Positions 5,955 through 64,000 of a stretch of DNA of 64,000 nucleotides are shown here, piece by piece. The translations under genes and the position numbers were made by a program. The stretch is taken from assembly GCF_037042905.1 (NCBI RefSeq), contig NC_087262.1:5332001-5396000 (forward strand), in the 5' to 3' direction. Position 1 is the stretch's first letter, and each line of letters begins with the position of its first letter. The DNA is from Lytechinus pictus (lineage: Eukaryota). Under the pieces are notes generated by a model, which saw nothing but the letters and a program-made list of their open reading frames with translations, was not told where the DNA came from and did no database searches.

Positions 5955-6137
5955 CATCATCATTATCATCATCATCATCATCATTATCATCATCATCATC
6001 ACACTCATCATCATCACCATCATCATTATCATCATTATCATCACTATCATTATCATCGTCATCATCATTATTATCAGCATCATTATTATCATCATCATCA
6101 TCATTATTATCATCATCATCATCATCATTATTATCAT
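5955..6137. repeat. (CAT/TAT)n microsatellite
   Basis: Direct inspection; it explains the poly-I/M/S ORFs. Confidence 0.95.
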
Positions 6138-13842: not shown

Positions 13843-14041
13843 CCGCCCTTTCACACGGTAAAAAAAAGAAATCGTTATTTGAACGTCATGATTCCAGTGA
13901 AAAATGAGGCTAGTGACGAAAATTTAGTACGTGTGAAACCAAACTAGAACATGATTAGAATCACGAACGCTAATCACGGCTACGATTTTAATAGTAATCA
14001 TCATTACAATGATGATTCAAGATTCGCGTGTGAAAAGGCCC
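13843..14041 (+). mobile_element. PIF/Harbinger-like MITE (CCGCCCTTTCACAC family)
   Basis: GCCCTTTCACACG ... CGTGTGAAAAGGCCC; very similar to 33472-33664. Confidence 0.85.
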
Positions 14042-16447
14042 TATATTTGTCTGCCTATTACGAACCTCAAGTGTTTCCTTGTTTATTAAGGGAATGACGC
14101 AAACATGGTTTACACAAAACACACACTAATACTAACCTGGTTAATGATTCTTCTGTTCTATTGTAACCTTATATGGTAATTTTATCCCAGCTGAAAGTGT
14201 CGCGATTCTGAGCTTGTCGGATAGTTAAGCGAATAATGTATATTTCACAGTCGACATGATATACCGGTCGTGTGAAAAGAAAAATGATTGATGATCACGT
14301 GATTCGATTAGACCAATCAAAACTCCCAATGGTTTTGTGAAGTTTAATAACCTTGTCATCACTTTCACACATTTATGTTTAGTACTCGAGGGATGCAGCA
14401 GTGTGAAAAGCTGGTGACAACGTGTGAAGAAATGTATACATGCATATAAATATATATTTCTAGAAAACAACAAAAATAATATTCATTAAAAATAAAGACC
14501 AGTTTAATCCCCTTCCTTTGGATTTGTTTTCGTTTTTATTTCATTAGTACCCCCCTCCCTTTCTAAACATATATCCATGATGTCTGCCCTCGGTTTTCAC
14601 TGGTGTTATTTTTCTTTAGTTCTATGCTTAACCAGCAATACTCATATGTACCGTAGTAGGTCCGTGTTTGTACACTAATTATTGTATACCATTCAAATCA
14701 GTGGCATGACGAGTCGATCATTTTTATCATGTTGATGGATCTTACTGGTGAAGACGATGCACATTTTTGTAAAAATCTGCGAGCGAGCAAAGCGAGCCAG
14801 CGGACAACAAATTCAACGGAGGTTTAAATTATTATAGGTTCAAATAAATTAAAAAGAAATAAATGAAAAAAAAAAAAGTAAATAGATGGATGAATAAATA
14901 ATGAAATTAATAAACAAATAAATAGATATATAAATGAATGAATAAATAAATTGAAAAAAATGAATGAATAAATAAATAACTTTGAAACTATAACAAAATA
15001 GAACAAACGTACAGTTGAGCGGATATTGGAGAGTTAAACTCATACCAGCAGGCCAGCAGTTCAAACGAATTAGGTTAATAAAAACGTACCATTTTTAGTA
15101 ACGAAAACATTTTTCTGTCAAGAATTGGTGTTTCCGTCGTGAAGTTATGGGAGCGTGAAATATCGAGTAAAAAATAATAAAATGCATTCATCACCTTGCG
15201 TCATCCGGCCGATACCCTCACACGAGTGTTAACACGGAAGGTGTTTTGCGGTGTACAGCTGGTATGTCAGGATTTATTATTAGGCTCGGATCTGTGTCTT
15301 GTGTTTAGATGTTTGTTTGTGTTTTTCCATGTTAGAATATTTGTTACAACCTTTGATGGAAGATTGTGATAACGATTGCCAACAACATCATAGTTGTATC
15401 TTTATTATCTTGTGTCGAACAATTAAAATCGTGTTTAGAACATTGTCTCTTATATATTTCATATTATTTGAAAAGTAATTAGGGCAGTTTTGATGGCAGA
15501 TTTGTATTTCTATAATAAATTGTTTGAAAAAGTGAACTTGCATCGTCTCTATCTTAACCCCCCCCCCCCTAATACAAAATTGAGATGATTTATTTTTGCG
15601 CGCTGTATCACTCCCCTTTCCTGTCGCTTCAATCATCGTTTTGCTCCTCGCCCCTTCTCTCTTCTTAATAGTCACTTACGGTATTTCTTTATTCCAGAGT
15701 TTGTCCGTTGCTTCGTGACCATACTGCCCTAATTTTTTGTTTAATAATAATTCAATAAGTTAAGTGCTCCGTCCGCGGTACAAATGTCAGATATTTATTC
15801 TTCACCATACACCACCTTCAACTCTCTTTCATTCATGTCAATTATTGTATAAGGTCATACGGTACTGAGCAATAATGAAATTCATCGTATTCCGCTTTTA
15901 TTTGAAGGTTATCAGTCCTTTTATATAACGTATGATGTTGAGAAGGGTTGCAGCATTTTCTTTACGCCTGATGGACCAAAGCGATCCCAACCTGTGAAAA
16001 GACATGTGTCGTTTGAAATGTGTGAACAACTGATTTTAACATATGATATGAAAGTAAACGTTATATTCATAGTAATGTCTTGTATAGGCTATGAATGGCG
16101 TATTCTTTATCTTCGCGAAAATAAACAAAGATCAAGGTTCATAGGCCTACTCATTTCTATCAACTAGAGAGGACTACAAAGGCAGAATAACAATTGACAA
16201 TATTCCTGATAATTACCATGCTTACACAATACAAATTTATTTTCTTTTTGACCACAATATCAAATCAAATAAATCCAAACGAATTGAACACTAGGGGGAA
16301 TAAGACGGTGCTTTTTATTTGCAGACGTAAACATGACGAAGAATTTTTTTTTATTCTTTACGATTTCAAATTTCCAGTCGAAATAGAATAATAAAAGTAC
16401 TATGAGTACATCAAAGTGAGGGAAAACATCCGGAGACTAAGGAAATA

Positions 16448-29958: not shown

Positions 29959-30234
29959 AGTAGTAGTAGTAGTAGTATTTAGTAGAAGTAGTAGAAGTAG
30001 TAGTAATAATAATCCGTTTTTTTATATAGCGCTTAATACATCGGAACGACGTGTCTAAGCGCTTTACAGATATATTATTACCCCGGTCATCGGATTCAAT
30101 CAGTCATTCCCGCACACAATGTGTGCACATCCTCCACTCCCTGGGGAGTAGTAGTAGTAGAAGTAGTAGTAGTAGTAGTATCAGTAGTAGTAGTAGCAGT
30201 GGTAGTAGTAGTAGTAGTGGTAGAAGTATTCATG

Positions 30235-30277
<43 letters not shown>

Positions 30278-30307
30278 TAGTAGTAAAAGTAGTAGCAGAA
30301 GCAGCAG
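29959..30307. repeat. (GTA)n microsatellites flanking a minus-strand SINE 3' fragment (about 30005-30145)
   Basis: AGTAGT arrays; TATATAGCGC...TATTACCCCGG tail shared with the SINE at 4410. Confidence 0.8.
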
Positions 30308-33471: not shown

Positions 33472-33664
33472 CCGCCCTTTCACACGGTAAAAAAAATCGT
33501 AATTTGAATGATGATTCCAGTGAAAAATAAGGCTAATGACGAATATTTAGCACGTGTGAAACCAAACTAGAACGTGATTAGAATCACGAACGCTAATCAC
33601 AGCCACGGTAACAATATCAGTCATCATTGCAATGATGAGTCAAGATTCACGTGTGAAAAGGCCC
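33472..33664 (+). mobile_element. Harbinger-like MITE (13843 family)
   Basis: TTA TSD on both sides; TIR GCCCTTTCACACG / CGTGTGAAAAGGC. Confidence 0.9.
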
Positions 33665-33770
33665 TTAATGTAGTGGCATCTCTTGATTAGTGCTAGAGTT
33701 GTAACAATAGTTATTCAAAAGAGGGTTATTTCAAAGGCTTGTTATTCGATTGATACTGCTTGTGCGCGTC

Positions 33771-52647: not shown

Positions 52648-53588
52648 TTGGAAGTATCTTGTAATTGATGAGAAATGAGCAAAACAAGCATGAAATCTGC
52701 CCGATGTCGGGACTTCTCCAAACTCTGATAACATACTCTCTGCGTTGTTGATCTACAGTGTGATGGTAACTGATTTCGTGAGTCACAAAGTTAAATTAAG
52801 TCAATTCAATAATTTAATTATATACTTGAAAATAAAAACCAAATGTCAGATAAGGATGGGTTGAAATTACTAAAATGATTTTGGAATTAATACAAGAGTT
52901 ATCTAAAGAAGATGTGAAGCTGTTAGATTTTGTTTTTGTCAAATGATAGGCTCCTCTATCTTAATGAGCAAAATAAAGAAATCGGACTGTAAATAATTTT
53001 GTACTGATCTTTTTTTTTACTGTTAAGTTATGATTTTTTTTCAATCCATAATTCATCGGGAGAGATGATATGTGAGTTTTTTCTGCTAATTCTACCAATA
53101 TTTATGACATTTGTCATTAACTCTGGGCAAGTAGAAAAAACAAATTGTTGTGAACAATTATTTTATAAAGTAACTTCCGCCCCCCCCCAAAAGAAACTCT
53201 TTATTAAACAAATAAATCAAGTTGTGTTTAATATGCCCATGGAGTGGACCCTCATGATATGGTTTAATATCTGTCTTTCTTTTTAAATCAAATCTAAAGT
53301 AGCAATTTATTTAGTCAAATAAGAAAAAAGTGAGGAGAAGGACCATACTTAGTAGCTGGTATTTTTCAGGATTTTGACACCAGTGACTGAGTCGGGGAGC
53401 ATGACCGATATTTTCTCGCTTGGTAAGCCTCCCGTGCTGTTTCGTACGTGCTTGTTTTTCCATAGCGTGAATTCATCGTAACCTAACTGCTTACGCTATG
53501 GGTCTTGGGAATTTTAAGTAGACATGTGGGGGTTTAAAGGCCCTGCTTACCGCCATGTTCTAATAACTACCTTGCTATAACATGCTCA

Positions 53589-54035
53589 TAAGTGTGATTT
53601 GGATAAAATGAATGAAAATTTATATAATTATTTGTTATCTTCCCCAAACGTATTCATTTGTATGAATTAGTTAAGCCGGTTGAAAAATTATATAATTGTT
53701 TGTGACCTTGTTAAGGCATATTCATTAGTGAAATTTGATAAACCGAATGAAAAATTATATTATCATCTGATACATTCTTCAAGCATAATCATTAGTGAAA
53801 TTAGATAAGCAGAATGAAAAATTATACAATTATTTGTTATCTTGTCCAAACATATTCATTAGTGTGAATTAATTATTAAAGCCGAATGAAAAATTCTATG
53901 AATGTTACCTTGTTAAATCATATTCATTGGTGAATTGGATAAACCAAATGAAAAATTATATTATTGTCTGATACCTTGTTAAAACATATTATTTGGTGTG
54001 AATTAGTCAAACCGAATGAAAAAAAATCTACAATT
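53589..54035. repeat. AT-rich minisatellite, about 66-68 bp, about 7 copies
   Basis: Recurrent ATATTCATTAGTG...GATAAACCGAATGAAAAATTATA. Confidence 0.8.
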
Positions 54036-54067
54036 GCTTAATTTTTCTTTTGCTTATATACTATCAG

Positions 54068-55682
54068 TGTGACTGCCTTCGTAAAACTTTCTACGAAGGA
54101 GTTTCGTCTACTTATGTCCAACTATTGTTATTCACAAGGCACAAGGAATCAATCAATGCTGGACTCGACTTGTTGAAATAAAACAAACTTTCGCTTTATT
54201 CAGTTAATCTCCAACACTGGTGACAAACTTCAGTCGTACTTTCAGTTATACTTATATGCACCTTCAGATAACAATCTGTAATGATAATGAATAAACAAAC
54301 AATAATAAACAAATGTTTCATCTTGAAATCATGTCAATTACTAAATCTAAGTTAGTACAACAATTACGATTACATATGATTAAATGAGAATTAATCTGAC
54401 ACTAATATAAGTGATCATCATACACTTGTACTATTATACCTTATAACATTAACCTAATTTAATAGAGTATAAAATATACAAGGAATAAAGTTAATCTATT
54501 GATTAAATCCTCGTATGAACACATCTACACTCACTTTGTGCTGTGCACTACTAAGTATTCTACCCAATAGATATTGGCCGGGTGAACATAACTACATGCC
54601 AACACAGTCATTCATTCAAGGTTTCTCCCTAAATCACTCCCAGAGGAAAGGTCTTTCTCTCCACGAAAGTTATGGTTTTGTTCTTAATAACAAATTGGCC
54701 ATGTACGAACAGTAATCTACATTATCACAAGTTAAACATGAAACTAAAGAAGTAACTCTTTAGAGATGATTAGAGTATAATAAGAAAACAAACTAGTAAT
54801 AGTTCCTACTATTACACTAACTCAGCTTATAACGAAACAGCATAACATTATTCTATCTTAAGATTAAAGTTAAACCAGATTAAAATACAAATGTGAACAA
54901 GCCCTGCATTTACAACGTGCAGTAACTTATCTACTCAAAAGAGAAAGTAAAAAGGGATGAATGTGAAAGGGGCCACATTCCAAAGTAGTCATTCATAGAC
55001 CCTGCTTCTACTGGATTAGCAAAAACAGACTCTCTTTGTTTCCCAATGAAACTAGACTTCTTGCTTTATGTATAATTACACCCAACTAATTCATTGTATT
55101 TAAAAGCCTTTTACATCTTAGCACTTCTAGATGGAAATGTATTATACAAGAACAATATTATGAGATCTATCAACATCAGTATATTCACCTATTCCTCAAA
55201 TATACTAAACTGTACAACAAAGAAATCAACTTTCCTACACTATGCAATATACGTATTACACTCTGTTAACACAAACACATAATCTTCTCTAACTAAAAAC
55301 ATTCAAAACTATCTTAAATAGTAATATGAATTCTACAATATATTTACCATGTTAAATATCAAAACAATATTATATGAAATATGTTCTTACCGAATTGGGC
55401 CTTTGTAGTTGTCCACAAATAACAATTTACTTGAACTTTCTGCAACTGATTGTGAGTAGTACTTTACTCCATCACTCTGACTATGAGAATGAAAGTTATC
55501 TTTACTTCCAAGAAGATATTCTTGGAGAGAAGTTGGAGAACAATGAAATTACTCTACTATTAGCGGTGAGTCACACCTTCTGGGGAAACATATACCTCTT
55601 TGGTGGTATAGTCTTGATAATCAGACTCTTGATGAAGATTGGATGAGAGAATATAACATCACTACACACTGCTGTAGTGACA
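54068..55682 (-). repeat. 3' LTR (relative to the ORF)
   Basis: Same sequence as 61752-63366 at offset 7684 wherever checked; AATAAA on the minus strand at 54195-54200. Confidence 0.97.
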
Positions 55683-55945
55683 TGGCTCCTTTAAATGTAC
55701 CTACATTTACTAAATTAGCTTCAATTATTACGAATATAAAGTACAACAAATTATACCACATCATAATACAAATTAATCTTAAACAATACTTTGACCAATA
55801 ATATACCCAATGGATACATACACACAATGCAACCTTTAAAACAGCATTCTAGCCTTTAGAATTATCACTGAACCATACATGAAAAGAAAAACAACAATTT
55901 AAACGCATCATTTATATCATCGTTAAATGAAAATGTAAAAGATAA

Positions 55946-56016
55946 TGGCTCTTTGAGGGGGAAAGCTCCGAGTCTTTCGCGAGACAAATGGGATACTTCC
56001 ACTTTACTACTGTGGA
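55946..56016 (-). pseudogene. Degenerate full-length tRNA-Asp(GTC)-derived sequence with encoded CCA in the element 3' UTR
   Basis: TCCACAGTAGTAAAGTGGAAGTATCCCATTTGTCTCGCGAAAGACTCGGAGCTTTCCCCCTCAAAGAGCCA aligns end to end (about 52 of 76 columns by hand) with canonical animal tRNA-Asp recalled from memory. The acceptor stem and B box are broken. Confidence 0.75.
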
Positions 56017-56032: not shown

Positions 56033-59000
56033 TTACTGTTGATTGGGTAACAGAAGAACTAACTTGTTTACTGGTCTGTCGAATTTAGTTGGTGGGCTCT
56101 GGCGTTTGCCATTATTATCTAACTGTCCATCAGCCATTAGAAGTTTTACCTTCCTAATTCTACCATCGGCACTAGGATAGACATCTATCACCCTAGCTAA
56201 GGGCCACTTGTATCGTCCTCCCTCCTCTTCTTTGGAGATTACAATATCACCTATCGTTAAGTCTTTTTCTGTACTTGTCCATTTTCTACGCTCTTGCAGT
56301 CCCTGCAAATATTCTTTCCTCCATCGTAGCCAGAACTCATTGGCGAGGTGTTGGACGCGTCTCCACCACTTCCTAGAGTACACATCTTCGCGCTGGAAGA
56401 CTCCTGGTGGGGGTAATATGACTTTGGGCTTGGCAGTCAAGATATGATGAGGGGTCAGTGGTTCTGGTGCTTCACTGTCACTTAGATTGGTTGTCGTCAA
56501 TGGCCTGGAGTTGATTATGGCTTCTGCTTCGGTCATGAAGGTTCTGAAGGCCTCATCATCAAGTTGACTCCCAGATGATTTCAGCAATGGCTCTAGTGCA
56601 CGTCGCACTGACTGAATCTGCCTCTCCCAAACTCCACCCATATGAGAGGCATGGGGCACATTCATCTTGAATGGTATCCAGTCACATCCATTCTCAAGCA
56701 GGTACTCTTGTACCTTTCCCTGGTCCATTTCAGACAGCGCTTCCTTCAACTCGTTTCTGGCTCCAATGAATGCTGTACCCTGGTCAGAGCGTAGATGCCT
56801 TACAGCACCCCGTCGATTCATGAAACGCCGCAACGCGTTGATGAAGGCACTGCTACTAAGACTGTTAGCAGTTTCCAGGTGTACACTTCTTGAAGACAGA
56901 CATGTGAAGAGCGCACCATATCTCTTGACTTCACTCCGTCTTTCCTTGATAAGAAAGGGTCCAAAATAGTCCACTGCACAATACGAGAATGGTGGAGAAG
57001 GCTCAACTCTTTCTTCTGGAAGATCTGCCATCTTTTGTTGGAGGGGCTGTCCTCGCAATCGTCGACATGTCACACAGGACGAGATGCATTGTGAAACTGC
57101 AGACACTCCTCCTATCACCCAGTATCCTCTCTGACGTAGCTCATTATGAGTAATGCCTCTACCACTATGTTGGGTCCTGTGATGAGCATCTCGGATCAGC
57201 AGTGTTGTGACATGACTCTTACGAGGAATAATCACTGGATGTCTAATGTTACTGGACAAATTGGCGCGATGTATCCGGCCGCCGACTCGAATCACCCCGT
57301 CATCATCTAGAAACGGGTCCAATCTGAAGAGGGCACTGGTTTTCTTCAGTGCCGCATTTCGAGTAGGTACTTCATGTCTACTCATTTCTCCTGTCTTATC
57401 TAGTTCTTTAAGAATCTGCAGCTCCTGCGGGAAGTTTTCTTGTTGTAAACCTCTAATGATGACCTTCTCAGCTTCCTGCAGCTCACTCACTGTCACAACC
57501 TTAGGGATCGTTGCTTCCACTGATCTAGAACTCGTTCTGGTATGCTGGTTAGCCCTTTTCTTCAGACTCGTCTTCAGCTGTATACATCTGGCTACTGCCT
57601 TCTTGGCAGAGTGCCAACTGGAGAAGCAATTCAAACGGTTGGATTCAAATTGCCCTGTACTGACCTTGGTAGTTGCTTCTGTTCTCAGGACTGAGGCATG
57701 CTTCACCTCTGGGTCGTGGTCATCTACCGTACATGGATCATCTCCTGGGGGTGCAAACAAACCATCATTCCACAGGAAATCTGGGCCTCGAAACCAGCAG
57801 TGGCTAGAAGTGAGCTCCTTTGATGAGATTCCTCGAGAAGCTCCATCAGCAGGATTCTCCTTGGTATCAACATAGTACCATGCATCAGGGTCAGTCTGCT
57901 CTCGGATTGTCTGAACTCTGTTGGCAACGAAGATATGAAACCGCCTGGCTTCATTTTTTATGTATCCAAGAACAACCTTACTGTCTGTCCAGAAGAACTC
58001 CTTCACAGAATCGTATTCCAGTTCCGACTTCAGGAATGTGCTGCTCTTGGCTGACAATGTTGCTGCTGTTAGCTCCAGTCTTGGAATGGTAATTGGTCTC
58101 AATGGAGTAACTCGGGCCTTTCCGATTACGAATGAACAATGCACTTTGTCATCCTCATTGATGAGACGGAGATATGAACATTGCCCATACCCATCCTGAC
58201 TGGCATCAGAGAAATGGTGGACTTCTACCTGCTTGACCTTGCCGAACCTACTTGGTTTGTAGCATCTCTTGAGTTGGAGGTCACCTAGATGCTGGAGATC
58301 AAGCAGCCATTTCTCCCATTCTGAACGCTGTTCATCGGTCATAGATTCGTCCCAGTCCATGTTCTGCTTGCACATAGCTTGGAGAATCCTCTTGCCTTTA
58401 AGAACTACTGGACCAAGAAAGCCGCTTGGATCATAGATTGAACTGATCGTTGAGAGAACACCTCGTCTGGAGAATGAGTTTGCCTTCACCTGCCCTCTGA
58501 AGTTGAAGGTGTCATTCTCAATGTTCCAGGACACTCCTAGAACTCTTTCCAGCACAAGCTTGTCGACATCTAAATCCAGGTCTTGCAGGCTTTTTGCTCG
58601 TTCATCTGCTGGAAAGCTTTTCAGAACTTCTCTGCTGTTAGACACAATCTTGTGCAATTTCAGTCCTGATTTTGCACAGATTGCTTGACTGTTTTTCAGC
58701 AGCTGCACAGCCTCTTCCGCAGTAGGTCGTGAACTAAGACCGTCATCTACGTAGAAGTCTCTACGAATGAACTCTGCTGCACTTGAACCGAACTCTTCTT
58801 CACCATCTGTTGCAGCCCTTCTCAGTCCAAAGTTACTGCATCCTGGAGAACTAGCTGCTCCGAAGAGATGAACCTTCATCCGGTATTCAACAGCTTCCTT
58901 TGTTTCGTCACCGCCTTCATACCACAGGAACCGCAGCAAGTTCCGGTCTTCTTCATTTACGTAGAACTGAAGGAACATTCCTTTCACATCAGCCATGAAG

Positions 59001-61642
59001 GCAACTTCTTCCTTTCGGAATCGGCACAGAACACCAAGTAGTCCATTCATCAGGTCAGGACCTTGCAGAAGATGATCATTCAAGGATACACCTTCAAATT
59101 TTGCTGAACAGTCGAATACAACACGAATCTTGTCAGGCTTGTGTGGATGGTACACCCCTGTGTGCGGAATATAGTTTACTCTGCCATCTCGAACCTTCAA
59201 GCAGTCATCTGGTACTCGTTCTGCGTAGTTGGTGATTACATCATCCATGAAGGCCTTGTAGTCCTCCAGAAACTTCTGGTTCTTCCTAAATCTTGCAGAT
59301 AGCTGTCTCCATCTTTTAACAGCAAGAATCTTGTTGTCAGGAAAGGTCACATGATCAGACTTCAAAGGCAAGGGCATTTGGTAGTGTCCATCACTTCTCT
59401 TGCGGATTCCATTCTCAAAGATTGCCATGAATCTTGCTTCTTTCACTGAAAGTGGCGCTCCTTTCGGACTTGTCATTTGGAAGTCTTGTTCCAAGATCTT
59501 CAGTACAGACTCTGGTGTAAACACTTCCTTCGCTTGGCTTGAGTGCACCAGGTGGGGATATCCTTCACTTGTCTGAATCCTGTTACAGACGGCATCATCA
59601 CTTTGAGAACTTTGACATACTCTGCCGACGACGCCCCATCCGAGTGAGGTTTTCATCGCATACGGGTCGTCTTCTGCACCAGCGAGTACTTCTCGGGGTC
59701 GAATTGCTCTAGGACAGTTGTTTCCTATGAGCAAGGAAACCTTAATTGACGGGTTGTATGGCATCAACTCATCTGCGATTGGTGCTAGATGCCTCCATTT
59801 CCTCAGAACTTCTGCCTTGGGAATTTGTGACCGCTTGGCCGGAACCTCTTGTCTGGTGTAGCAGGACGGGAGTTGGACAACTGTAGACTTCTGGAAGTCC
59901 AAGACCTCGAGACCACTAATCTTTTGACAGCTAATGCGAGCACTCTCGTGCATTGTTGTCAGCAAAAGATCAGTCTCAGGTCCTTTAACACCCATTCTGT
60001 GGCAAAGACCACTGGAGACAAATCCAACGTTGGACTGGTCGTCGAGGATCGCATATTCCAGGAATTCCCTCGATGGATCATCAGCTTGCCTCACCCAAAC
60101 CGGCACAATCATACAATGGTCCTTTCCATCTTGGTCAGGAAGATCGCAGATGTTGGTACAGTTTGAGCTAGCCGATGATTTTTCTATCTTCTGTCGGTGT
60201 AGGCATGTCAAGTGGTTTCCCTTACACCTTTTACATTCCCGGCGTTGCTTGCAGTCCTTCCCAAGGTGGTTGCTACTTTGGCCACATCCCATACACAGAT
60301 ACTTCTTGAAGAAGAACGTCTTCTTATCCTTGTAGTAGATCTGCTTGAACTCTGGGCAGTCGTCGATGTGATGGTCCTTATCACAGTAAGGACATGATGA
60401 ATACTCCTTTCCATGTGCGGCTGTTGTAGACAGTGACCGACCTTGAAAGGTCTTCCCTTTCGGAGGTGCTGACTTTACTTTCGCCTCGTCTAACCTGGTG
60501 TATTCCAACTCTGGAATATTGGCCACTTCTGCTGCACTGGTGACGAAGTCTACAAATCTGGCAAAGGTAGGGTAACTGCCATATCCACATCGCTGCCACT
60601 TGGTCACCTCGTCTCTCCATTTGCGTTCAAGGTAGAATGGAACCTTCCTCAACAGCTTGACGTTCTCCTGCGGATAATCGAGAATGCCAAGGGAATCAAC
60701 AGTCACCTTGGCAACGCTGACCTGCTGGAGAAAGTCCGCAAATGACCGCAATCCACTTGGATCCCGATCTGAGATTCTCGGCCACGTGTTTAACTTCTTC
60801 ATGAATGCTGATGAAACTACACTGGTGTTGCCATACCTGCTGGCGAGAGACTCCCTTGCTTTCAGGTAAGCTTCATCGGTGCCAAGAAGAAGATAATGCT
60901 CCACGACCTTCTTTGGTTCACCAGTAACATATGTATGCAACATATGAAGCTTGGTTGCGGCATCTAGAGGCTTGGAGTCAACGAAACTTGAAAATGCATT
61001 TCTCCAGAGGGGATATCGTAATGGGTCACCATTAAATACCGGAACATCCACCTTTGGTAACTGACTGGCTGCCAATACTTGTTGACTAGTCGCATTTTGA
61101 TTCAGCATCATGTTGGCTACCTTGGCAAGTGACTCAACCACGTTTTCCATTCCTGGTGAAGCGTTGGTTGGTTCATGCTTCACTTCACTCAGAGTGGCTG
61201 GAACTGGTGGGGCTTGGGTCTGGATCTTGCCCTCATCCGTCGATTGAGATTCAAAGAATCTTTGAACAGACTCCTCCTTCGTCTCCTCTGGCAACTTGAT
61301 ACTGGTGTTTGAGAGCTCATCTTCTGATTCTGCAAGTTCGGCTAATTTCTGCTGATGTTCTTTCTGCAGCTTCAACCGTTTCAGCTCCATCTGGGCTCTC
61401 TCCAGTTGCATTGCATGTTCATGCTCCCTTTGCAGAATCTTTATGTTGTCCTCTTTGTCCATAACATCAAGTTCAGCCTGAAAGGCCTTGATAAGCATCT
61501 CGCTTTTGGCTGATTTTCTGCTTGCTAGACTCCTAGCTGGTTTTGGATACTTATCCATCATTTCTGGCAGCGAAGAGGACGTCCTCTGAAGATCTACACG
61601 TGTAGCCTCGCTGACTAGATTTTTTCCATCTATGTTGGCCAT
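56033..61642 (-). CDS. BEL/Pao Gag-Pol polyprotein (1869 aa from the first ATG; frame open to at least 61729)
   Basis: Gag LPKVDVPVFNGDP; three Zn knuckles (CPYC..H..C, CMGC..H..C, CKRC..H..H); protease ILDDQS; RT FYVDDG; RNase H HFSDAS / LELTAA / WTDS; integrase HHCC plus VDYFGPF / SDQG / WERQI; C-terminal FWLRWRKEYL; no env. Confidence 0.97.
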   Translation of the reverse strand: MANIDGKNLVSEATRVDLQRTSSSLPEMMDKYPKPARSLASRKSAKSEMLIKAFQAELDVMDKEDNIKILQREHEHAMQLERAQMELKRLKLQKEHQQKLAELAESEDELSNTSIKLPEETKEESVQRFFESQSTDEGKIQTQAPPVPATLSEVKHEPTNASPGMENVVESLAKVANMMLNQNATSQQVLAASQLPKVDVPVFNGDPLRYPLWRNAFSSFVDSKPLDAATKLHMLHTYVTGEPKKVVEHYLLLGTDEAYLKARESLASRYGNTSVVSSAFMKKLNTWPRISDRDPSGLRSFADFLQQVSVAKVTVDSLGILDYPQENVKLLRKVPFYLERKWRDEVTKWQRCGYGSYPTFARFVDFVTSAAEVANIPELEYTRLDEAKVKSAPPKGKTFQGRSLSTTAAHGKEYSSCPYCDKDHHIDDCPEFKQIYYKDKKTFFFKKYLCMGCGQSSNHLGKDCKQRRECKRCKGNHLTCLHRQKIEKSSASSNCTNICDLPDQDGKDHCMIVPVWVRQADDPSREFLEYAILDDQSNVGFVSSGLCHRMGVKGPETDLLLTTMHESARISCQKISGLEVLDFQKSTVVQLPSCYTRQEVPAKRSQIPKAEVLRKWRHLAPIADELMPYNPSIKVSLLIGNNCPRAIRPREVLAGAEDDPYAMKTSLGWGVVGRVCQSSQSDDAVCNRIQTSEGYPHLVHSSQAKEVFTPESVLKILEQDFQMTSPKGAPLSVKEARFMAIFENGIRKRSDGHYQMPLPLKSDHVTFPDNKILAVKRWRQLSARFRKNQKFLEDYKAFMDDVITNYAERVPDDCLKVRDGRVNYIPHTGVYHPHKPDKIRVVFDCSAKFEGVSLNDHLLQGPDLMNGLLGVLCRFRKEEVAFMADVKGMFLQFYVNEEDRNLLRFLWYEGGDETKEAVEYRMKVHLFGAASSPGCSNFGLRRAATDGEEEFGSSAAEFIRRDFYVDDGLSSRPTAEEAVQLLKNSQAICAKSGLKLHKIVSNSREVLKSFPADERAKSLQDLDLDVDKLVLERVLGVSWNIENDTFNFRGQVKANSFSRRGVLSTISSIYDPSGFLGPVVLKGKRILQAMCKQNMDWDESMTDEQRSEWEKWLLDLQHLGDLQLKRCYKPSRFGKVKQVEVHHFSDASQDGYGQCSYLRLINEDDKVHCSFVIGKARVTPLRPITIPRLELTAATLSAKSSTFLKSELEYDSVKEFFWTDSKVVLGYIKNEARRFHIFVANRVQTIREQTDPDAWYYVDTKENPADGASRGISSKELTSSHCWFRGPDFLWNDGLFAPPGDDPCTVDDHDPEVKHASVLRTEATTKVSTGQFESNRLNCFSSWHSAKKAVARCIQLKTSLKKRANQHTRTSSRSVEATIPKVVTVSELQEAEKVIIRGLQQENFPQELQILKELDKTGEMSRHEVPTRNAALKKTSALFRLDPFLDDDGVIRVGGRIHRANLSSNIRHPVIIPRKSHVTTLLIRDAHHRTQHSGRGITHNELRQRGYWVIGGVSAVSQCISSCVTCRRLRGQPLQQKMADLPEERVEPSPPFSYCAVDYFGPFLIKERRSEVKRYGALFTCLSSRSVHLETANSLSSSAFINALRRFMNRRGAVRHLRSDQGTAFIGARNELKEALSEMDQGKVQEYLLENGCDWIPFKMNVPHASHMGGVWERQIQSVRRALEPLLKSSGSQLDDEAFRTFMTEAEAIINSRPLTTTNLSDSEAPEPLTPHHILTAKPKVILPPPGVFQREDVYSRKWWRRVQHLANEFWLRWRKEYLQGLQERRKWTSTEKDLTIGDIVISKEEEGGRYKWPLARVIDVYPSADGRIRKVKLLMADGQLDNNGKRQSPPTKFDRPVNKLVLLLPNQQ

Positions 61643-61739: not shown

Positions 61740-61751
61740 TTCGATTGTTAT
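61740..61751 (-). promoter_or_regulatory. Non-tRNA primer-binding-site position (ATAACAATCGAA)
   Basis: Abuts the 5' LTR, lacks TGG, and is complementary to the predicted LTR splice junction. Confidence 0.55.
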
Positions 61752-63366
61752 TGTGACTGCCTTCGTAAAACTTTCTACGAAGGAGTTTCGTCTACTTATG
61801 TCCAACTATTGTTATTCACAAGGCACAAGGAATCAATCAATGCTGGACTCGACTTGTTGAAATAAAACAAACTTTCGCTTTATTCAGTTAATCTCCAACA
61901 CTGGTGACAAACTTCAGTCGTACTTTCAGTTATACTTATATGCACCTTCAGATAACAATCTGTAATGATAATGAATAAACAAACAATAATAAACAAATGT
62001 TTCATCTTGAAATCATGTCAATTACTAAATCTAAGTTAGTACAACAATTACGATTACATATGATTAAATGAGAATTAATCTGACACTAATATAAGTGATC
62101 ATCATACACTTGTACTATTATACCTTATAACATTAACCTAATTTAATAGAGTATAAAATATACAAGGAATAAAGTTAATCTATTGATTAAATCCTCGTAT
62201 GAACACATCTACACTCACTTTGTGCTGTGCACTACTAAGTATTCTACCCAATAGATATTGGCCGGGTGAACATAACTACATGCCAACACAGTCATTCATT
62301 CAAGGTTTCTCCCTAAATCACTCCCAGAGGAAAGGTCTTTCTCTCCACGAAAGTTATGGTTTTGTTCTTAATAACAAATTGGCCATGTACGAACAGTAAT
62401 CTACATTATCACAAGTTAAACATGAAACTAAAGAAGTAACTCTTTAGAGATGATTAGAGTATAATAAGAAAACAAACTAGTAATAGTTCCTACTATTACA
62501 CTAACTCAGCTTATAACGAAACAGCATAACATTATTCTATCTTAAGATTAAAGTTAAACCAGATTAAAATACAAATGTGAACAAGCCCTGCATTTACAAC
62601 GTGCAGTAACTTATCTACTCAAAAGAGAAAGTAAAAAGGGATGAATGTGAAAGGGGCCACATTCCAAAGTAGTCATTCATAGACCCTGCTTCTACTGGAT
62701 TAGCAAAAACAGACTCTCTTTGTTTCCCAATGAAACTAGACTTCTTGCTTTATGTATAATTACACCCAACTAATTCATTGTATTTAAAAGCCTTTTACAT
62801 CTTAGCACTTCTAGATGGAAATGTATTATACAAGAACAATATTATGAGATCTATCAACATCAGTATATTCACCTATTCCTCAAATATACTAAACTGTACA
62901 ACAAAGAAATCAACTTTCCTACACTATGCAATATACGTATTACACTCTGTTAACACAAACACATAATCTTCTCTAACTAAAAACATTCAAAACTATCTTA
63001 AATAGTAATATGAATTCTACAATATATTTACCATGTTAAATATCAAAACAATATTATATGAAATATGTTCTTACCGAATTGGGCCTTTGTAGTTGTCCAC
63101 AAATAACAATTTACTTGAACTTTCTGCAACTGATTGTGAGTAGTACTTTACTCCATCACTCTGACTATGAGAATGAAAGTTATCTTTACTTCCAAGAAGA
63201 TATTCTTGGAGAGAAGTTGGAGAACAATGAAATTACTCTACTATTAGCGGTGAGTCACACCTTCTGGGGAAACATATACCTCTTTGGTGGTATAGTCTTG
63301 ATAATCAGACTCTTGATGAAGATTGGATGAGAGAATATAACATCACTACACACTGCTGTAGTGACA
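61752..63366 (-). repeat. 5' LTR (relative to the ORF)
   Basis: TGTCACTAC ... GCAGTCACA on the minus strand; 1615 bp. Confidence 0.97.
61960..63074 (-). other. Predicted spliceosomal intron inside the LTR (1115 nt; also 54276-55390)
   Basis: Donor CG|GTAAGA, acceptor TTTGTTTATTCATTATCATTACAG|, U-rich interior; the exonic remainder of the LTR is 500 bp. Confidence 0.6.
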
Positions 63367-64000
63367 ATCAGGTTGCGATTTTAAAAGGGTACATTTAAGG
63401 AAATGACAATTTTTTACTTGTAAAGTATGTAATCAAATTCTTTGGGGGATTTTATGCATGATTGAATGATTTGCTCATCTAATCGAAATAGATTAACTGA
63501 TACACGTTAAAATTAAAATGTTAGAGCACCATGAAAGGGCCAAGGTGTGACCACATATTGAAGTGTTCGATGATTGGTTGATCTTATCGTGCTATAGATT
63601 TTTCAACAAAAAAAGTGTTGATATGTCTATAACATTTTTTAATGTGGTAAATCCTCGTAGCGAGTTGTGCCTTCACACAACATGAAACTGATATCCGTGT
63701 CCAATTAATATTTGATAAGTTGTATTGTAATAAATATAAAATCTTTAGATTTTTTTTTACTTTTGGTATATTCTTGTTTTGTAAGGTTATTTCATACTTC
63801 TATTGGAAGGTGGTTATGGATTTAGAATTTCATTTTTGTTGACTCTTTAGTCGAAGAAAAGTGGGCCTATAGTGAAAGTGGAACATGAAGAACTGCGTGA
63901 ACTTTTTAGAAAATAGTGACACGATATCGAGGTCTTAGACCGTATGTGACACTTATCGTGCGGGGTAGGGCTAATTGGAATAGTGATACCGGTTCTCGGC

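Follow-up and report, generated by a model that had tools for sequence, protein, structure and literature searches.

How is the second DNA strand started in a BEL/Pao retrotransposon whose last internal nucleotides look like the 3′ end of a tRNA, at the place where a polypurine tract (PPT) is expected? This question was raised by an element on the minus strand of a 64,000-nt stretch of Lytechinus pictus DNA, which was analyzed as a whole and is called the window. Read in element sense, the internal region ends with TAAATGT-AGGT-ACATTTA-AAGGAGCCA, and the 3′ LTR starts with TGTCAC at 55682 without any gap; on the plus strand, 55683-55709 reads TGGCTCCTT-TAAATGT-ACCT-ACATTTA. The initial annotation had described this hairpin and tail as flush with the 3′ LTR, and the exact LTR edge determined here confirmed the junction.

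The host element is an intact, young and multi-copy LTR retrotransposon, because it has identical LTRs, a target duplication and a gag-pol ORF, and because a second family copy (L001), located on a different L. pictus chromosome, has a duplication of its own (TAGGG), identical LTRs and a protein 99% identical. The gag-pol protein of the window is also 99% identical to a Lytechinus pictus protein. Its Pfam domains were Peptidase_A17 of the Pao type (E 2e-46), DUF5641 (4e-26), DUF1759 (1e-12) and Integrase_H2C2 (integrase zinc domain), and the direct TG...CA LTRs with a short target duplication are likewise those of BEL/Pao elements. LTR identity ends exactly at 55683/63367 and 54067/61751 and ATCAG adjoins both outer ends, so the CCA of the tail lies outside the LTR. 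Besides the element, no ORF of at least 180 aa was found elsewhere in the window. The second copy (L001:8286-17583) lies within a large LDL-receptor/CUB-domain gene on the opposite strand. The coordinates of all features are given in Table 1.

Table 1 Features of the BEL/Pao element and of its two LTR junctions in the window
Feature	Position	Strand	Remarks
Target-site duplication ATCAG (5 bp)	54063..54067, other copy 63367-63371	.	Abuts both outer LTR ends
3′ LTR	54068..55682	-	1615 bp, TGTCAC...GTCACA, 100% identical to 5′ LTR
9-nt tail AAGGAGCCA, presumed plus-strand primer sequence	55683..55691	-	Flush with U3; last 7 nt = tRNA-Asp 3′ end
Hairpin TAAATGT-AGGT-ACATTTA (7-bp stem, 4-nt loop)	55692..55709	-	Folded; covariation across 28 distinct sequences
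tRNA-Asp-derived sequence, sense orientation, ends AAAGAGCCA	55946..56016	-	52/76 aligned columns identical to human tRNA-Asp positions 1-75; degenerate, no cloverleaf
gag-pol ORF	56033..61642	-	1869 aa from first ATG (61642); stop codon 56035-56033
PBS for self-primer (putative), ATAACAATC	61743..61751	-	Directly after 5′ LTR
5′ LTR	61752..63366	-	1615 bp, 100% identical to 3′ LTR
U5 hairpin CCTTCGTA-GAAAGTTT-TACGAAGG	61760..61783	-	8 nt before LTR end; stem changes yet stays paired in relatives (by eye)
Predicted transcript 5′ end / self-primer GATTGTTAT	61952..61960	-	In 5′ LTR, 209 nt before its end; exact complement of the putative PBS

The GGAGCCA of the tail, which the initial annotation had equated with the end of tRNA-Asp, is indeed the final 7 nt of tRNA-Asp-GTC (PMC12217144), the comparison being with the human tRNA only. 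Against this human reference, the 9-nt tail of the window has 7 Watson-Crick and 2 wobble pairs, and most relatives have 9 of 9. However, the site is not placed like a primer-binding site (PBS), which follows the 5′ LTR and acts in the sense RNA; it stands before the 3′ LTR and is complementary to the tRNA only on the antisense strand. It is not a canonical PPT either, that is, an uninterrupted run of ~10 purines abutting U3, because AAAGGAG (7 nt) is followed by CCA and then by TGT; some other BEL/Pao lineages do have such a ~10-nt run at U3. Taken by themselves, the tail and hairpin of this single copy appear to be within chance: 25 of 100 shuffled versions of the window contained GAGCCATGT, and the hairpin folded at -3.5 kcal/mol with z ~0. 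The evidence against chance comes solely from relatives.

Nine further genomic elements were therefore compared, namely five urchin families (Lytechinus, Strongylocentrotus, Diadema), one element each of Patiria, Actinostola and Penaeus, and the second L. pictus copy, together with 80 metagenome loci whose Pol identity ranged from 60% down to 39%. All elements at least ~48% identical over the C-terminal ~900 aa of Pol had the hairpin, an RRRGAGCCA tail and TGT at the LTR. In ~30 related elements from several phyla, with hosts including urchins, a starfish, an anemone and a shrimp besides the metagenomes, this tail directly adjoined TGT; its length was 9 nt, with one exception of 8 nt, and GAGCCA was invariant. 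The exact junction, with CCA outside the LTR and duplications adjoining TGT...ACA, was established for the window element, L001-L004 and L006-L009. The commonest tail was GGGGAGCCA, a 9/9 match to the last 9 nt of tRNA-Asp, and urchin tails were AAGGAGCCA. Positions -9 to -7 varied between purines only, even in the close relatives L010 (GAG) and L070 (GGG), so these positions do not track the host tRNA.

The hairpin upstream of the tail was analyzed by a covariance model built from six GAGCCA-type elements, since plain MAFFT left the variable loops unaligned. The model gave a single match in each element, invariably at the 3′ LTR border, and, at E ≤ 1, no others on either strand of the 879 kb searched. 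For 28 distinct sequences, 99% of the cells were paired and 7 of 7 pairs had compensatory changes on both sides, in an alignment that was fitted to the structure by the model and is thus biased toward it; the covariation score was 0.795, compared with 0.159 in shuffles and at most 0.17 for slid partners. Raw sequences without any alignment had the same compensation (TAAATGT/ACATTTA, TGAAATA/TATTTCA, TAACTGC/GCAGTTA, ACAGTGG/CCACTGT, TGGATT/AATCCA). GAGCCA-type hairpins mostly had a Watson-Crick stem of 6-8 bp (up to 10) and a loop of 3-9 nt. These comparisons indicate that the module of hairpin and tail is real and under selection. That an ordinary junction resembles a tRNA end and a hairpin by chance has next to no probability: the 9-mer and hairpin of the window would allow it if seen in isolation, but the invariance and covariation in ~30 elements of several phyla, and the co-occurrence of the tail with a tRNA-Asp-derived element, led us to reject it.

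No G:U pair was present in 195 stem cells of the 28 distinct elements, and all changes went from one Watson-Crick pair to another. This is unusual for a structure that forms in RNA only, and it may mean that the hairpin has to form in DNA or on both strands.

More distant BEL/Pao lineages had the same AT-rich hairpin at the same place, sometimes even with the same stem words TAAATGTG/CACATTTA, i.e., TAAATGT(G)/(C)ACATTTA. Their tails were also G-rich but different: (A)GGGGCCGG followed by 0-3 nt, GGTGGGGAGG(G/A), GGGAGGGAG, AGGTGGGAG, GGGACCGGGAA and GGCGGGGG. Several among GGTGGGGAGG, GGGAGGGAG, AGGTGGGAG and GGCGGGGG are pure-purine tails flush with TGT, i.e., ordinary PPTs, in sister or outgroup lineages. 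At the base of the GAGCCA clade stand L028 and L034, whose tails AAGGGAGGCA and AAGGGAGGTG have no CCA. A Pol tree placed 28 of 30 GAGCCA-type elements in a single clade (SH-aLRT 92), with the elements of the GGCCGG type and the GGTGGGGAGG type as its sister group (99) and purine-only types outside. The hairpin thus appears to be a general feature of the plus-strand start in BEL/Pao, older than the tRNA-like tail, with CCA confined to one lineage. Since the same hairpin is combined with other G-rich tails in sister and outgroup lineages, parsimony assigns the function of a PPT to the GAGCCA-type module as well. The same distribution bears on two points of the initial annotation. The hairpin had been taken for a possible mimic of the tRNA T-arm, which no longer holds, because the same hairpin and stem words precede non-tRNA tails elsewhere in BEL/Pao. 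Loss of CCA in relatives had been named as evidence against a tRNA reading; CCA is conserved throughout the GAGCCA lineage as such, but not in L028, L034 and the other BEL/Pao lineages. Among the metagenome loci L037-L089, the pre-LTR hairpin was seen with differing invariant tails (GGGGCCGG + 0-3 nt, GGTGGGGAGG, GGGACCGGGAA).

A copy of tRNA-Asp had also been noticed upstream of the junction, and it turned out to be real: 55946-56016 aligned with human tRNA-Asp at z = 14.7 against shuffles. Its fold was not remarkable (z = -0.5). ARAGORN found no tRNA genes in the window or the 36 loci scanned, and Rfam gave no tRNA match in the window or the loci scanned at the gathering threshold and at E ≤ 10, so the relationship to tRNA-Asp rests on primary-sequence alignment with shuffle and reversed-query controls. 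Reversed queries scored 20.4 on average (maximum 28), compared with 34.8 (maximum 59.5) for the true tRNA-Asp query. Every GAGCCA-type element had such a sequence near or overlapping the pol stop codon, and in many families it supplies the last pol codons (...GAG GAG CCA stop). The best-preserved portion was a GC-rich T-arm-like hairpin followed by YCRAGGAGCC(A/T), and in several families the similarity spanned all of the tRNA, the anticodon loop TGTCACGC included (z = 6-14). No tRNA-Asp-like sequence was found in the other BEL/Pao lineages (alignment z below ~1), which means that the copy is lineage-wide and occurs only together with the GAGCCA tail. With cnidarian, crustacean and echinoderm hosts, the tRNA-Asp-derived copy is ancient.

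Eukaryotic tRNA genes do not encode CCA, and CCA therefore marks a mature tRNA that was reverse-transcribed. That a tail equal to the last 9 nt of a tRNA should arise by coincidence in the very lineage that captured this tRNA is unlikely, at roughly 1 in 1000 by our estimate given G-rich tails. Capture of mature tRNA by retroelements has a precedent in Culex cqgypsy_1, which contains a tRNA dimer with CCA (PMC3286476). The element studied here is similar to this case, and to the tRNA-like CCA ends of plant viral RNAs and the Mauriceville retroplasmid, in that a mature CCA-bearing tRNA was reverse-transcribed into the element and a tRNA 3′ end stands at a start of replication. However, the present copy is ancient, lineage-wide, located at the pol end and without a tRNA fold, and the CCA at the LTR border is not a terminus of the RNA but lies within it.

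The initial annotation had combined the tail with this copy (55683 plus 55946-56016) into a bipartite primer-binding site of the Ty3 type. Ty3 likewise has a pair of tRNA-related sites that lie apart, with one close to the genomic 3′ end, but these are complementary to tRNA-iMet and capture it on the RNA. The two sites of the present element are tRNA-sense and overlap in the part of the tRNA that they represent, the acceptor 3′ strand. Since they have the same sense as the tRNA and are not complementary to it, they cannot bind tRNA-Asp on genomic RNA, and a Ty3-type bipartite PBS was rejected.

Another use of the copy would be that a fragment of this tRNA-Asp-like region (...GGAGCC(A)) relocates to the tail site on minus-strand DNA, similar to the translocation of the hepadnavirus primer from DR1 to DR2, or that the internal copy is a second plus-strand start, similar to a central PPT. 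Each GAGCCA-type element does contain two modules of a hairpin and RRGGAGCC(A), the last 9 nt of both modules are identical in L001 and L007, and AAGGAGCC is present in both modules of urchins. But the modules do not covary strictly or consistently across GAGCCA-type families: most families combine an internal GAGGAGCC with a GGGGAGCC next to the LTR, and L011 and L036 are discordant, their internal module reading AAGGAGCC and their LTR module GGGGAGCC or TGGGAGCC. CCT is a frequent end of the internal copy, which often falls within the last pol codons and is degenerate and unstructured in the window, where it ends with AAAGAGCCA, compared with AAGGAGCCA in L001. We consider either form of internal priming very improbable.

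The 5′ LTR was examined in the same way, because the first strand also needs a primer. The ICTV profile describes BEL/Pao elements with an 18-nt PBS for the 3′ end of tRNA-Arg or tRNA-Gly and a 10-nt PPT, and calls BEL/Pao replication poorly understood (PMC8742986). In none of the elements examined, GAGCCA-type included, did TGG directly follow the 5′ LTR; in GAGCCA-type elements, the sequence at this place is complementary to the LTR itself. A search for 12-nt PBS complements with up to 2 mismatches gave nothing useful, and an exact complement of 8-11 nt emerged in a second search. In the GAGCCA lineage, the 8-11 nt that directly follow the 5′ LTR have their perfect reverse complement within the LTR, at a site 125-294 nt before its end; over all loci with such a self-complement (the window, L002-L009, L012, L016, L070, L084 and L089), the distance was 90-294 nt. 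The two partners, self-primer and PBS, covaried in at least six families and were always at offset 0. The pairs were GATTGTTAT/ATAACAATC in urchins, Patiria and L070, TTGTATTCTAT/ATAGAATACAA in L007, AGTTTTAC/GTAAAACT in Actinostola, AGTTTAAC/GTTAAACT in Penaeus, CGATGTTTTAC/GTAAAACATCG in L016 and GTTTGAC/GTCAAAC in L012. In the window, GATTGTTAT is also present in the 3′ LTR at 54268-54276. AATAAA follows the site in each family, ~75 nt downstream of the self-primer in the window, which fits an R region, and a covarying hairpin precedes the LTR end in self-primer families. The minimum-energy fold of the predicted R-U5-PBS RNA of the window pairs the 5′ end with the PBS (z = -4.3). For a single element, chance controls were weak, since the 8-mer was present in 2-17% of shuffled LTRs, so the case for a self-primer rests on covariation and constant position.

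A sequence after the LTR that is complementary to the predicted transcript start and covaries with it between families is the signature of Tf1-type self-priming, and the first strand of these elements is thus predicted to be primed as in Tf1 and not by a tRNA. The covarying self-primer would also explain why a canonical PBS is missing at the 5′ LTR. Tf1-type self-priming is known for Ty3/gypsy elements (PMC10085805, PMC6934838). Tf1 and sushi elements (Lin and Levin 1997; Butler et al. 2001, both as cited in PMC10085805) are similar in having no tRNA PBS and in pairing the first 8-11 nt of the predicted transcript with the sequence after the 5′ LTR, a pairing that encloses R-U5 with a U5 hairpin. 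But Tf1 and sushi are Ty3/gypsy elements, whereas the present ones are BEL/Pao, with a predicted transcript start and RNase H cut. Literature on BEL/Pao PBS and PPT features, self-priming, PPT hairpins and tRNA-like elements, with subscription literature covered only in part, gave no description of such signatures, and an earlier description is possible. In L041, L043, L059/L060 and L063, the sequence after the 5′ LTR begins with TT... and has no self-complement at offset 0.

On this basis, the junction at the 3′ LTR can be interpreted. The reading that we prefer, with a probability of about 50%, is that 55683-55709 is a plus-strand priming module made of a hairpin and a PPT-like tail, which would use the element's own 9-nt RNA as the primer, and whose identity with tRNA-Asp would have come from recombination with the captured tRNA. 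Its first part would be the AT-rich hairpin, ancestral to a wide range of BEL/Pao elements, and its second part the single-stranded 9-nt tail RRRGAGCCA, ending where U3 begins. The minus strand would first be copied through the 55683-55709 region. RNase H would then digest the template RNA but spare the 9-nt tail, with the hairpin and its T-rich 3′ arm fixing the 5′ limit of the remnant, and a cut after CCA would define the 3′ end of the primer. Extension of this element-derived RNA by reverse transcriptase (RT) would let the LTR begin at TGT. The tail would accordingly be the lineage-specific form of the G-rich tract that other lineages hold at the same place. Its identity with tRNA-Asp, which is probably not due to chance, would be tied to the copy at the pol end, most likely by RT template switching or sequence conversion between the GGAGCC(A) sites, and the tRNA-Asp-like tail would since have been retained within the invariant core.

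If the element starts its first strand from its own 5′ end, in the manner of Tf1, neither end requires a tRNA. The RT plausibly works with short RNA primers flanked by a hairpin, because initiation of the minus strand would also use a 9-11-nt RNA beside a hairpin, and both putative primers exactly abut the LTR termini. The module resembles the PPT primers of HIV-1, Ty1, Ty3 and Tf1 with their upstream T/U-box: it is immediately 5′ of U3 and G/A-rich, has a T-rich sequence upstream (the 3′ arm of the hairpin), and its 3′ end sets the LTR start. According to work cited in PMC10085805, T-rich sequences that immediately precede the PPT are important when retroviruses and Ty1 prime the plus strand. 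Unlike in these primers, 6-7 purines are followed here by an invariant CCA, a covarying hairpin is fixed 9 nt from the LTR, and the tail is a tRNA 3′ end. Secondary structure at the plus-strand primer site has a parallel in the PPT-containing stem-loops reported for Sirevirus elements and HIV (PMC3601003); there, the PPT lies in the loop of a stem formed with U3, whereas here the hairpin is local and upstream, and the tail is unpaired. The purine run of the window copy, which is only 7 nt long (AAAGGAG) with CC between it and the LTR, argues against a PPT, and a plain PPT model leaves unexplained the invariant CCA, the exact match that most families have between their tail and the final 9 nt of tRNA-Asp, and the fact that the identity fills the whole single-stranded tail. 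The module is probably best described as a variant of the PPT, found alongside evidence for self-priming in BEL/Pao.

In a rival reading, which we consider unlikely, host tRNA-Asp would prime the plus strand on minus-strand DNA; priming by tRNA-Asp at this end had been one proposal of the initial annotation. After RNase H digestion, the minus-strand DNA would refold the hairpin and expose 3′-YYYCTCGGT-5′, the tRNA 3′ end would anneal over 9 nt and be extended into U3, and removal of the tRNA would leave an LTR starting with TGT. In its favor, ~30 elements from several phyla carry an unchanging GAGCCA whose CCA directly adjoins the LTR, and most tails match the end of tRNA-Asp at 9/9 positions. 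Every tail variant is a G-to-A change that still forms a G:T wobble on a DNA template, and the identity covers exactly the single-stranded tail. A retro-copy of mature tRNA-Asp with CCA is confined to the same lineage, which suggests that the tRNA was present where the RT works, and the absence of G:U pairs from the 195 hairpin cells agrees with a hairpin forming in DNA as well. Primer-binding sites of yeast Ty elements have a size range that includes 9 nt. The antisense junction, LTR...ACA followed by TGGCTCC, even has the canonical form of the tRNA PBS of LTR elements, with 7-9 nt complementary to tRNA-Asp, but it is found at the 3′ LTR with the complement only on minus-strand DNA, and the putative PBS for minus-strand synthesis, at the 5′ LTR, has no TGG.

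Several observations speak against such a role of the tRNA. The sister lineages carry the same hairpin with tails that match no tRNA end and have no CCA, so the module works without a tRNA, and L028 and L034 lack CCA as well. The complementarity never exceeds 9 nt and is 7 Watson-Crick pairs in all urchin families, the acceptor stem would have to be unwound for just 9 pairs, and variation restricted to purines is equally a prediction for a PPT. We also know of no LTR element with a tRNA-primed plus strand. Combined with the self-primer, this mechanism would mean that the priming roles were swapped in one BEL/Pao lineage, with the element's own 5′ end starting the first strand and host tRNA-Asp, on 9 nt of DNA beside a DNA hairpin, starting the second, and we regard this swap as rather unlikely. 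Taken together, the interpretation of the initial annotation was partly supported.

If tRNA-Asp were the primer, this would be a new way of starting plus-strand DNA and the first LTR element known with a tRNA-started plus strand. If the tail is only a variant of the PPT, it still shows how tRNA capture and a primer site become linked. To our knowledge, replication of a BEL/Pao element has never been studied biochemically, and three cis-elements of a large lineage in metazoans can now be tested: a hairpin that covaries and keeps a fixed distance from U3, an invariant tRNA-Asp-like tail with an ancient captured tRNA-Asp, and a covarying self-primer that replaces the tRNA PBS. The signatures can also help annotation, since they mark the 3′ boundary and the orientation of these elements, which would be missed by standard searches for a tRNA PBS and a PPT.

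The module could instead act mainly at the RNA level: it could be a packaging or dimerization signal, bring the 5′ and 3′ genome ends together, or mimic a tRNA 3′ end for a host tRNA-binding factor. A conserved hairpin could equally form in RNA, and the U5 motif GAAACTCCTY complements the purines of the tail and covaries with them (CTCCTT/AAGGAG in urchins, CTCCTC/GAGGAG in Patiria). However, the fixed position at U3 is the signature of a plus-strand start, the U5 complement is just 6 nt and is missing in L007, L008 and L070, no tRNA-like fold was recognized by tRNA finders, and CCA is internal to the RNA. We consider a mainly RNA-level role quite improbable.

The conserved U5 motif GAAACTCCTY (61760-61790 in the window; also in L003, L004, L006, L007 and L070) is the 5′ arm of the covarying U5 hairpin. 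Within this motif, CTCCTT or CTCCTC complements the tail purines and changes along with them between urchins (AAGGAG in the tail) and Patiria (GAGGAG in the tail), which may be due to chance or to an interaction of the 5′ and 3′ ends. In Penaeus, TGGCTC was found 15 nt before the LTR end.

A tandem array at 53568-54023 (units of ~67, 134 and 202 bp; 73-80% matches) lies in the host DNA that flanks the element, 45 bp beyond the 3′ LTR. The window also contains long trinucleotide arrays of ~61 (CAT) and ~50 (AGT) units at 5955-6137 and 30147-30295, and a 155-bp dispersed repeat with 89% identity at 13888-14042 and 33511-33665.
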